Shown: positions 20,685 through 44,713 of the stretch, in pieces
Layout: every line of letters begins with the position of its first letter
Position numbering within the stretch: the stretch's first letter is position 1
NCBI RefSeq assembly: GCF_000006765.1
Contig: NC_002516.2
Origin: Pseudomonas aeruginosa PAO1
Lineage (GTDB): Bacteria; Pseudomonadota; Gammaproteobacteria; Pseudomonadales; Pseudomonadaceae
DNA length: 64,000 nucleotides
Strand: one strand, 5' to 3'
Translations under genes and position numbers: made by a program
Notes under the pieces: model-generated
Told to the model about the DNA's origin: nothing
Databases searched by the model: none
The model's input: only the letters and a program-made list of their open reading frames with translations

Positions 20685-20708
20685 GGCCGCCCCAGGTCGG
20701 ATCGACCG

Positions 20709-20789
20709 CTGGGGCGAATAACCGCTTGCGGTTATCCGCCGGTTCTCCGGAGTCTCGGCGGATAACGCCTGCGGCGTTATTCGCCCTAC
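20709..20789. repeat. 81-bp REPIN (inverted REP doublet) between convergent ugd and fruA
   Basis: (CTG)GGGCGAATAACCGCTTGCGGTTATCCGCC - 16 nt - GGCGGATAACGCCTGCGGCGTTATTCGCCCTAC; same design as 40839-40919 and 41068-41148. Confidence 0.88.
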
Positions 20790-20837
20790 CCCCTGCCACG
20801 TCGCTCAGGTGGCGTAGGGCGCATGACCGCCTCGCGG

Positions 20838-40558: not shown

Positions 40559-40838
40559 GGGGTAGCGACTTGCCGTGGAGCATTGGCCATGACTCAGGGC
40601 ACGAAGGTGGCGTTTCGGCACCGGGTGCACGGGGACTGCCTGGCGGGCCGTGAATGCGTGACTGGCCCCCAGCTCCCGTCGCTGCCTGCACGGCACTAAG
40701 GGGGGAAGCTGTTGCTTAGCGCTTGAGCGGGCGTCGTGCTTGCCTTGGTCTCTTGTTTCGCCTTTCCAGGCGAGTTCCTTCTGCAAGCGTCCAAAAGACT
40801 CGCCCCACTACTCGGAGGGCATGCCAGGAGCCCGATCC

Positions 40839-40919
40839 GTAGGGCGAATAACCGCTTGCGGTTATCCGCCGGCTGTCCGGGGCATCGGCGGATACCGCCT
40901 GTGGCGGTATTCGCCCTAC
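40839..40919. repeat. 81-bp REPIN in unit 1
   Basis: GTAGGGCGAATAACCGCTTGCGGTTATCCGCC - 16 nt - GGCGGATACCGCCTGTGGCGGTATTCGCCCTAC. Confidence 0.9.
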
Positions 40920-41067
40920 GGGACGTTCGAGCGGGCTTCATGTTTGCTGCTCAAGCTGCTTGTCGTGCTTGCCTTGGCCTCTTGTTTCAACTTTCCAGGC
41001 GAGCTCCTTCTGCAAGCGTCCAAAAGACTCGCCCTGCCACTCGGAGGGCATGCCAGGAGCCCGATCC

Positions 41068-41148
41068 GTAGGGCGAATGACCGCTTGCGGTTATCCGCCG
41101 GCTCTCCAGGGCATCGGCGGATACCGCCTGTGGCGGTATTCGCCCTAC
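41068..41148. repeat. 81-bp REPIN in unit 2
   Basis: Near-identical to 40839-40919; offset 229 bp. Confidence 0.9.
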
Positions 41149-41541
41149 GTGACTATATCGCTCGCGATTTCTTAGCTACACGGCAGTGAGGGGGTCGCTG
41201 TTGCTTAGCGCTTGAGCGGGCGTCATGTTTGGTGGTCAAGCTGTTTTCTGTGCCTGCCTTGACCTCTTGTTTCGCCTTCCCAGGCGAGTGCCTTTTGCAA
41301 GCGTCCAAAAGGAACCAAAAGACTCGCCCCGGCATCCGGCCCCAGCCGCTTCTCGACTGGGGTGCCCTCCTGACGGGGCGGGTTTGCCGCCCCACCACTT
41401 GGAGGGCAAACCTCCCTTCGTGCATGCCAGGAACCCGATCCGTAGGGCGGATAACCGCAAGCGGTCATTCACTCTACGGATCAGGGCTTCGGTATGTGGA
41501 AGTCTGGCATGCACGAGGTCATCCCCCTCCTGAAGCGCCCC

Positions 41542-42327
41542 TCAGCTCAATCGAATCCTTCCGCTCGCCACCAGCACCGCATGCCCGGCGATACTCACCC
41601 GCTCGCCCTCCAACCGGCACCACAGCTCGCCGCCGCGCGCCGAGCACTGCTGGGCGGTCAGCGACAGTTTGTTCAAGCGCTGGGCCCAGTAGGGAATCAG
41701 GCTGCAATGCGCGGAGCCTGTGACCGGGTCTTCGTCGACGCCCATCGCCGGGGCGAAGAAGCGCGAGACGAAATCCTTCTGCAGACCCCGCGCGGTGACG
41801 ATCACTCCACGCCAGGGCAGCCGCGCCAGGGCCGCGAAGTCGGGGCGACAGGCGCGCACCGCCTCTTCGGACTCGAGCAGCACCAGCAGCTTGTCGGTGG
41901 AGCCCAGCACGTCCACCGGCGGCAGGCCCAGGGCCTGCTCCAGCTCGACGGTGCTACCGACTTCGCTCGGATACTGCGCGGGGAAATCCAGGACCAGCCG
42001 CTCGTCCTCGCGGTTGACCCGCAGCGCACCGGAGCGCGAGATGAATTCCAGGCGCTCGCCCGGCTCGTCGTAGACCTCGAACAGTACGTGGGCCGCAGCC
42101 AGTGTGGCGTGGCCGCAGAGCGCCACCTCGACGCTCGGGGTGAACCAGCGGATCCGCCAGGCCTCTCCTTCGCGAACGACGAAGGCGGTCTCGGAGAGGT
42201 TGTGCTCGGTCGCGATCATCTGCATCAACTCGTCCGCCAGCCAGGCGTCGAGGCGATAGACCACGGCGGGATTGCCACTGAACGGGCGGGAAGAAAACGC
42301 GTCGACCTGGTGGAACTCGAGCTGCAT
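41542..42327 (-). CDS. PhzF-family isomerase/epimerase (261 aa)
   Basis: QVDAF..FSGNPAVV, NLSETAF, LCGHATLA, EDPVTGSAH; start at ATG 42327. Confidence 0.92.
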   Translation of the reverse strand: MQLEFHQVDAFSSRPFSGNPAVVYRLDAWLADELMQMIATEHNLSETAFVVREGEAWRIRWFTPSVEVALCGHATLAAAHVLFEVYDEPGERLEFISRSGALRVNREDERLVLDFPAQYPSEVGSTVELEQALGLPPVDVLGSTDKLLVLLESEEAVRACRPDFAALARLPWRGVIVTARGLQKDFVSRFFAPAMGVDEDPVTGSAHCSLIPYWAQRLNKLSLTAQQCSARGGELWCRLEGERVSIAGHAVLVASGRIRLS

Positions 42328-44070: not shown

Positions 44071-44541
44071 TCATTCACGGCCGATGGCGGCGAACGAACC
44101 CTGGGTCAGCTGGGCCAGCACCTCGGCCGCCAGCTCCACTTCCAGCCCGCGCCGTCCTGCGCTGACATGGATGCTCGGGTACTGCCGCGCGCTTTCATCG
44201 ATGAAGGTACGCAGGCGCTTCTTCTGCCCCAGCGGGCTGATCCCGCCCACCAGGTAGCCGGTGGCCCGCTGCGCCGCCTGCGGATCGGCCATGTCGGCCT
44301 TCTTCGCCCCCGCCGCATGGGCCAGGGCCTTCAGGTCGAGACTGCCGATCACCGGCACCACCGCCACCAGCAACTCGCCCTTCTCCGTGGCGGCGAGCAG
44401 CGTCTTGAACACCCGCTGCGGGTCCAGGCCGAGCTTTTCCGCGGCCTCCAGGCCATAGGAAGGTGCCTTGGGGTCGTGGCTGTAGCTGAGCACCTTGTGC
44501 GCGGCGCGGGCCTTTTTCAGCAGGTCGATGGCAGGGGTCAT
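44071..44541 (-). CDS. ybaK: Cys-tRNA(Pro) deacylase YbaK (156 aa)
   Basis: MTPAIDLLKK, RVFKTL, GGISPLGQKK, SAGRRGL motifs. Confidence 0.9.
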   Translation of the reverse strand: MTPAIDLLKKARAAHKVLSYSHDPKAPSYGLEAAEKLGLDPQRVFKTLLAATEKGELLVAVVPVIGSLDLKALAHAAGAKKADMADPQAAQRATGYLVGGISPLGQKKRLRTFIDESARQYPSIHVSAGRRGLEVELAAEVLAQLTQGSFAAIGRE

Positions 44542-44713
44542 GGTCACTCCCGGAGAAGAACGTTGGCTGAAAACCGGCGCCTACCTTAAGCCATCGCCGC
44601 CCCTGCTGCACGGGCGCCGATGCCGCGGCCCGCGTGCCTCGGTAGCGATATTCGATTGGCCGCGAAAACGAAACCGGAGGGTCGTTTTTCGGACAAACGT
44701 TCATCTTCGCGCT

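Follow-up and report, generated by a model that had tools for sequence, protein, structure and literature searches.

The window analysed here is a stretch of 64,000 nucleotides from Pseudomonas aeruginosa PAO1, and we focused on its gap between two convergent genes, at 40076-40558 on the plus strand and 41542-42327 on the minus strand. The first codes for a hypothetical protein (called at 140 residues in other strains) with no Pfam or NCBIfam family, and it borders the locus in every strain fetched. The second codes for a PhzF-family protein, the Pfam PhzC-PhzF family having been found on an identical protein elsewhere. Three related units (40689-41516) occupy the gap, each composed of a module that is not a repetitive extragenic palindrome (REP), followed by a GTAG-type REP or by a REPIN, a doublet of REPs. 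[quoted passage not shown]

Tandem Repeats Finder detected a 229-bp period over units 1 and 2 (1.8 copies, 94% identity over 40733-41153), and a repeat search yielded three-copy direct families (D2-D4) together with the REP palindromes I3, I4 and I9. Both agree with the original prediction, made from the sequence alone, of three related units between convergent genes with an offset of 229 bp between the first two. The core GCAAGCGTCCAAAAG occurs exactly three times in the 64 kb, always within the unit region, compared with a mean of 0.19 in shuffled sequences, of which 0 of 100 reached three. Three-way alignments bore out that units 1 and 2 have neither the duplication of GGAACCAAAA nor an internal block with CGCCCC at its borders, and that a 25-nt block kept in units 2 and 3 is missing from unit 1. 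The predicted 28-mer shared by units 1 and 3 (40708-40735 and 41197-41224) is identical by direct reading. Unit 3, predicted to be the fullest form, is so within the window only: relative to the 357-nt module of most other strains it lacks ~105 nt, with a 4-nt CCTC microhomology at the deletion (in blastn against the module of allele L009, query positions 75-178 remained unmatched), and it is therefore itself a deletion derivative.

All three copies in the window are thus truncated. Of the family core, short module 1 (40702-40835, minus strand) has only the 3' hairpins and the A/C-rich tail left, as determined with a covariance model, R1, and alignments. It is followed by REPIN 1 (40836-40924), whose two inverted GTAG-type REP hairpins correspond to inverted repeat I4, with the REP pattern at 40837 and 40903. 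Short module 2 (40925-41064, minus strand), 229 bp from module 1 and detected by R1 and the repeat searches, likewise comprises two 3' hairpins and the tail, and it precedes REPIN 2 (41065-41150; inverted repeat I9, REP pattern at 41066). The long module of unit 3 (41190-41433, minus strand), delimited by blastn and R1, lacks in its ~105-nt deletion helices 3-7 of the family core. Next to it, a REP hairpin at 41434-41485 (inverted repeat I3) is enclosed by a 13-nt arm (41504-41516) that is 100% complementary to 41418-41430 (inverted repeat I5).

The REPs of units 1 and 2 have the layout of REPINs, with perfect outer arms of 12-14 nt, 57-59 nt apart, that enclose two hairpins. A core hairpin followed by a GTAG-type REP had been predicted for every unit, and all three have this order, except that unit 3 has one hybrid hairpin as its REP and no doublet. 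Another REPIN of the same GTAG family, with no module attached, lies at 20707-20830 of the window. At another locus of PAO1, a reported 'orphan CRISPR array 2' (3841728-3841955, PMC11687729) was considered and rejected as CRISPR, as it is a run of GTAG-type REPINs.

Units 1 and 3 each start with a degenerate type I-F CRISPR repeat, which we call R_a and R_b. R_b (41168-41189, minus strand; TTTCTTAGCT----ACACGGCAGTGA) carries a single deletion of 4 nt and otherwise agrees with the type I-F repeat sequence GTTCACTGCCGT(A/G)TAGGCAGCTAAGAAA at 22 of 22 positions, and the corresponding pattern has one match in the window for 0 expected by chance. In P. paraeruginosa, an intact 28-nt repeat occupies the orthologous position (L109, L111, L113). 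R_a (40681-40701, minus strand; GCTGCCTGCACGGCACTAAGG on the plus strand) is more decayed, with 15 of 21 positions in agreement, and alignment puts it in the same register as R_b and as inverted repeats of P. paraeruginosa that are better preserved, e.g. that of L082. None of the 22 P. aeruginosa alleles examined lacks R_a, and most of them have R_b. If an array is taken as two or more nearly identical 28-nt repeats at regular intervals, with ~32-nt spacers, there is none in the window, only these two decayed repeats, 487 nt apart. Between REPIN 2 and R_b lies a 17-nt block, GACTATATCGCTCGCGA (41151-41167, minus strand), that might be a spacer remnant; the same 17-mer follows a repeat in L009, in L032 of P. 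paraeruginosa and within the intact array of L099.

Other strains carry a genuine array at this position. L005, reached through a search for spurious open reading frames (ORFs), contains the left flank of the window, an element similar to unit 3, and then a series of 13 or more TTTCTTAGCTGCCTATACGGCAGTGAAC copies with 32-nt spacers; the reverse complement of this sequence is the type I-F repeat of P. aeruginosa. Ten strain genomes were fetched through the identical PhzF-family protein, a procedure that is unbiased for arrays. Their intergenic regions range from 761 to 3987 bp, and six of the ten harbour 4-20 canonical repeats at the locus, preceded by ~960 bp with a 104-residue ORF (ORF104) and an A/T-rich leader. 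The alleles with the flanks of the window and 4-20 canonical repeats, GTTCACTGCCGTATAGGCAGCTAAGAAA, adjoining the modules are L005, L009-L011, L014, L015 and L017. The CRISPR RNA (crRNA) transcription direction corresponds to the minus strand of the window. Every CR2-type leader, whether of the cas-adjacent CR2, of the isolated CR3 or of the loci in P. paraeruginosa, has ORF104 (MAKPNDTS...; L009:11169-11483) conserved just upstream of it. This ORF matches no Pfam or NCBIfam family; it is missing from the window, and in the decayed locus L082 it carries a frameshift.

According to the abstract, the matched passages and one Results section of Malaluan & Dy (bioRxiv 2026, PMC13142298), CR3 is an isolated array of type I-F that lies between ybaK and mmsR, with a leader region 98% identical to that of the cas-adjacent CR2. 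In the window, 44071-44547 is a YbaK-like gene and 35724-36656 an mmsR-like gene of the AraC type, and the tRNA_edit domain of the YbaK type was found on the matching gene in other strains. No cas genes are present within 10 kb in any allele at this locus. The locus is the known CR3 site, and the window is an array-less allele of it. Those parts of the preprint make no mention of the modules, of the decayed repeats of array-less strains or of the REP-to-REP junction, and the words 'trailer' and 'PA3577' do not occur in its text.

The array-less junction is precise. The reverse complement of 41420-41545 matches L009 10780-10883 joined straight to L009 13005 onward, and the join falls inside TATCCGCC, common to the REP downstream of the PhzF gene and to the REP at the distal array end. 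The crossover maps to GGCGGATA at ~41446-41453 of the window, within the hybrid hairpin of unit 3. As the array-less allele is a REP-to-REP fusion at TATCCGCC, the ORF104-leader-array segment lies exactly between two REPs. Four REPINs of the same type occur in a row upstream of CR2, and REP-by-REP recombination can thus explain both movement and loss of the segment. We lean towards the array having been lost in this strain rather than never gained.

The 22 alleles and the window always combine one long module with 1-3 short ones, and strains carry 2-4 cores. In most strains the long module is 357 nt in length, at 97.8-100% identity, and two different deletions affect it elsewhere, of ~105 nt in the window and of ~89 nt in four other alleles. 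Local amplification and decay, as the original prediction had it, are visible in these variable core numbers and in several different microhomology deletions. Two further disturbances were noted in other strains, namely an IS3-family insertion sequence (HTH_Tnp_1 and rve) between modules in an array-bearing strain (L014:13192-14354), and the end of a Mu/D3112-like prophage that directly follows ATGCCAGG, where the module of unit 3 meets its REP (L004:5225-5245).

An exact-pattern scan of genome contigs with the core hairpin gave ~52 chance matches and four in P. paraeruginosa ATCC 9027. In this species, full modules were found at three loci unrelated to the window, each with an inverted type I-F repeat outside the module and the ORF104-leader-array segment on the other side. 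Locus A lies between SCP2 and PhoD genes, with arrays of 4-16 repeats, and locus B between two BCCT paralogues, with arrays that range, between strains, from 1 to 21 repeats; locus C has decayed, and its ORF104 has a frameshift. Three P. paraeruginosa strains have a perfect 28-mer as the solitary inverted repeat. L099 and L101 harbour a second module inside the array, at a spacer position between two good repeats, and the 17-mer found before R_b in the window also stands before this second module.

We read the region as a relic, in which three truncated copies of a REP-associated structured element are framed by decayed type I-F repeats at the CR3 site, and which would have originated in an array interval, been duplicated and then eroded. 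We give this reading a probability of about 0.72. The anatomy of the region, its CRISPR repeats, the series of alleles, the family membership and the covariation are established by the data; the order of events that we infer is as follows. In the lineage shared by P. aeruginosa and P. paraeruginosa, a member of the family, with its ~250-nt folded core, A/C-rich tail and REP ends, would have come to occupy a single interval between two repeats of a type I-F array. Unequal recombination would then have duplicated this interval, with a repeat-to-repeat duplication giving rise to the relationship between units 1 and 3, and a REPIN-to-REPIN duplication to the 229-bp units 1 and 2. Deletions between direct repeats of 4-7 nt would have cut the copies down. 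Lastly, the ORF104-leader-array segment is absent from this strain, where the junction is a clean fusion of two REPs. The copies left in the window are probably inert.

The alternative that survives best, although we consider it unlikely, is that a pair of modules forms the arms of a vehicle for arrays, with recombination or transposition at modules or REPs inverting and relocating CR2-type arrays, and the window retaining a leftover arm. Consistent with it, in L099 (4490-4738 and 6225-6473) and also in L101, two inverted modules bracket the ORF104-leader-array segment, and the orientation of this cassette relative to the module is opposite in P. aeruginosa and P. paraeruginosa; inverted module pairs could explain this inversion. 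In addition, module and cassette occur together at four independent chromosomal sites, and no module is found at the cas-adjacent CR2. Nevertheless, most alleles have a module on one side only, and REP-by-REP homologous recombination alone accounts for the observed junctions. No target duplications were found either: the direct repeats flanking the cassette at locus B, which we considered as a candidate, are the 3' tails of two tandem BCCT paralogues and were rejected.

In every copy examined, the module is directly 5' of a repeat on the minus strand, which suggested that the modules might be decayed CRISPR leaders, each unit being a dead mini-array composed of a leader and a first repeat. In L082, the minus-strand order is module, repeat, 32-nt spacer and second repeat, and one such mini-array of P. 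paraeruginosa points away from the active array. We regard this explanation as very unlikely. A relationship of the module to the CR1 or CR2 leader or trailer was rejected, as blastn with 7-nt words detected no significant similarity. Both the CR2 loci and the cas-less oprD-pvdL loci are devoid of the module, which is G+C-rich and folded, in contrast with the A/T-rich true leader, and the repeat-proximal bases differ between copies. Furthermore, members in other species lie in ordinary intergenic regions, with no CRISPR repeat beside them in the sequences read.

This brings us to the distribution of the element whose truncated copies, on our preferred reading, make up the relic. An initial search in protein space, with the plus-strand frame, returned only spurious ORFs of the window locus. 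Relatives were sought through spurious ORFs on the open frame that runs through the module, from which a profile was built. The profile search retrieved 30 spurious ORFs annotated as 'hypothetical proteins', from Pseudomonas sp. BN417 (at least five contigs), BN411, BN102, BN515, BN415 and A46, from P. alcaligenes and Metapseudomonas lalkuanensis, and from compost metagenomes. At the four loci of other pseudomonads that we read, the element lies in ordinary intergenic regions. At two of them it is bracketed by inverted repeats of 33-37 nt that contain a GTAG REP (L124, 33 nt, 85% complementary; L123, 37 nt, 76%); such ends are absent in L126 and around the P. aeruginosa module. Judged from these sequence comparisons, the module is a member of a wider Pseudomonas repeat family and not merely a local sequence, and its presence at several loci together with the inverted repeats suggests that the family is mobile.

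Other collections were searched as well. With the variant hairpin pattern of L099, seven viral contigs were matched, and the metagenomic viral contig L120 aligns over 238 nt at 69% identity (score 165, compared with 28 +/- 4 in shuffles). A metagenome scan recovered the same loci again, plus one chance match (L094). Using blastn, unit 3 of the window had no match in plasmids and phages, and the full 357-nt module had three short ones. One is in phage Forsyth, with 126 nt at 75% identity in a host-derived end that is unique to this record; transposable phages of this kind package host DNA. At the end of the PA14 host DNA that Forsyth packaged lies a diverged copy resembling the module (L114:617-738, 75% identity, 34 bits with R1), and with L004 this makes two independent insertions of Mu/D3112-like phages at module-type DNA. 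The other two matches are in megaplasmids, over 56 nt at ~86% identity. In one of these, the P. aeruginosa megaplasmid NZ_CP093017.1 (L115:1340-1560), an intergenic partial member of the family combines those 56 nt of the core with a 5' CCCCTCTCCCAGA..GGGG domain, as in BN417 and BN411.

A neutral local duplication of a REP cluster, in which the non-REP blocks would be ordinary unique intergenic DNA, is accordingly highly improbable. Within P. aeruginosa, the well-conserved module was found at the window locus only (with near-exact patterns and partial data), and its copy number varies freely between strains while copies decay, all of which speaks for such a duplication. Nevertheless, the module has homologues at other loci and in other species that covary strongly, and decayed CRISPR repeats frame the units.

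The intact element appears to be a folded one. In a cross-species alignment of ten sequences, RNAalifold predicts 68 pairs over the ~250-nt core, with a covariation term of -4.4. Compensatory changes affect 24 of the 68 pairs, compared with 9.2 +/- 1.8 in shuffles, none of 500 of which reached 24; controls in which the structure was slid gave 0-4. Pairing is possible in 97.7% of cells, versus 91.0% in shuffles and 36-54% in slid controls. The consensus fold reaches -108.4 kcal/mol on the sense (minus) strand and -85.4 kcal/mol on the antisense strand, with 25 G-U cells versus 4 A-C cells on the sense strand. The better fold of the minus-strand sense favours RNA, or single-stranded DNA, of that strand, although this test is partly circular.

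R1 gave 210-273 bits for full copies and 137.9 bits for the L125 copy, on which it was not trained; most other high scorers were in the training set, and E-values are rough. The L125 member, from Metapseudomonas lalkuanensis, has a ~65-nt insertion in helix 4-5 of the core (L125:1455-1520) and still scores 138 bits. In the window, R1 has three matches only, all on the minus strand, at 41263-41404 (139.7 bits), 40749-40845 (44.2 bits) and 40978-41074 (34.4 bits). The module matches no Rfam 15 family at an E-value of 1 or less. In Rfam searches, the full module of L009 gave a sub-threshold CRISPR-DR4 match on the neighbouring canonical repeat and weak chance matches to MIR918. A promoter scan revealed nothing, and terminator-like matches are the module hairpins.

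The last of the rival explanations, that the region encodes a small protein, 'PA3577', with an upstream riboswitch-like leader, can hardly hold: a 90-residue ORF is open at 41153-41425 on the minus strand, and one paper (PMC7857532) refers to PA3577 as a small gene lying downstream of PA3578, mentions a hairpin region with predicted transcription and proposes a PA3577-associated riboswitch, but the ORF runs through the module and the decayed CRISPR repeat, is affected by deletions of ~89 and ~104 nt among strain alleles (at least one of them frame-shifting) and by 1-nt indels in P. paraeruginosa copies, has no Pfam or NCBIfam family in any of the six frames (a DUF1467 match being far below cut-off), and accumulates substitutions that track base-pairing, not codons. 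This ORF, probably the one annotated as 'PA3577', looks like a spurious gene call.

The broader claims of the original prediction fared well. It had regarded the units as more than a REP or bacterial interspersed mosaic element (BIME), and the non-REP block is indeed found at the three P. paraeruginosa loci, on a viral contig and in other pseudomonads. A structured module is borne out by the compensated pairs, and its fusion to REPs by the REP-containing inverted repeats of two other species. The 'CCAAAAG...ACCAAAA' repeats that it mentioned from other pseudomonads turned up as a variant hairpin of the same family. Of the observations that it named as refuting, neither a restriction of the non-REP blocks to this locus nor an absence of covariation was found. 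It missed the decayed CRISPR repeats, the CR3 site, the truncation of all three copies and the presence of a single well-conserved locus in P. aeruginosa.

Several points weigh against our reading of the region as a relic of an array interval. The invasion of a spacer position is based on one intact example, L099, and on 17-nt and ~13-nt remnants, the sum of which is only roughly that of a spacer. In P. paraeruginosa, the module is usually outside the array, upstream of ORF104 and beside the inverted solitary repeat, and thus its adjacency to repeats could stem from inversion or duplication and not from insertion. Loss and gain of the array yield the same REP junction. The strand preference is partly built into the structure prediction, and a comparison confined to P. 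aeruginosa and P. paraeruginosa shows weak covariation and no significant strand bias (20 G-T versus 18 A-C pairs). The scan of the genome collection gave no P. aeruginosa match, the window locus included; the representative of this species may therefore be masked, and dispersal within it was poorly tested. Lastly, the only hint of transcription is the prediction that the region downstream of PA3578 is transcribed (PMC7857532).

We consider that the odds are about even that intact members of the family act as folded RNA read from the minus strand of the window, i.e. in the same direction as the crRNA precursor (pre-crRNA). The main alternative is a structure for transposition as single-stranded DNA. 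A more ambitious proposal, rather unlikely in its entirety, would be that of an undescribed family of structured RNA carried on REP-ended mobile elements, with a ~250-nt core, a multi-branch junction and two 3' hairpins. In the P. aeruginosa and P. paraeruginosa lineage, copies in spacer position of type I-F arrays might form part of the pre-crRNA transcript, from which Cas6f would excise them at the repeats on either side, inverted pairs might bracket the ORF104-leader-array segment, and recombination at the modules might invert and relocate CR2-type arrays and so generate isolated arrays such as CR3.

For the annotation of this model pathogen, a CRISPR-array relic with truncated repeat elements is a better reading of the stretch than the 'hypothetical gene' and the riboswitch proposed for it. 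Array-less strains keep a scar at the CR3 site, composed of two decayed repeats, modules and a REP-to-REP junction. It offers a marker with which gains and losses of isolated arrays can be scored throughout the pangenome, and it points to REP recombination as the mechanism. The ~250-nt element, present in well-studied pseudomonads, with its 24 compensated pairs and no Rfam match, is a candidate for a new structured RNA or for a structure that serves transposition as single-stranded DNA. More than the relic itself, it is the family and its link to isolated arrays that deserve interest.

Of the known systems compared, the CR3 array lies at the same locus as the region, and the array-bearing strains that we fetched have the same repeat and a CR2-like leader, whereas the window has no array. 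Solitary repeat units, reportedly described by Camara-Wilpert et al. in 2023, are said to be RNA anti-CRISPRs of phages. The P. paraeruginosa loci are reminiscent of them, with a single intact type I-F repeat alone beside a structured sequence. Nevertheless, these loci are chromosomal and beside a bona fide array, and the repeat in the window is decayed.

REPINs consist of two REPs, and RAYT transposases mobilise them (Bertels & Rainey 2011, PMC3116915). Like REPINs and BIMEs, the units end in inverted GTAG-type REP hairpins, the same REPs are dispersed, and the family has REP-containing ends in two species. However, REPINs have a short spacer between their REPs, whereas here ~400 nt of conserved, covarying structure lie between or beside them. 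The only Rfam family that matches this region is RF02404, the Pseudomonas small RNA P33, and it does so on the REP doublets (34.5 bits on REPIN 1 and 32.6 bits on REPIN 2). All its matches, at 23-35 bits, are below the gathering score of 45 and cover the REPINs, not the module, and nothing in the whole window reaches any Rfam gathering threshold. Lastly, the family resembles bacterial MITEs (miniature inverted-repeat transposable elements) with folded cores, such as ERIC, Correia/NEMIS and the R-family repeats R200 (320 bp) and R26 (352 bp) of P. fluorescens (PMC2718517), the latter two being compared by description only. They have in common several intergenic loci per genome, a size of a few hundred bp, a hairpin-rich sequence and, in some copies, inverted ends. 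The family differs from MITEs in that no autonomous partner or target duplication was identified (no RAYT or empty-site search was run), and in that its 24 compensated pairs out of 68 are more typical of a functional RNA.

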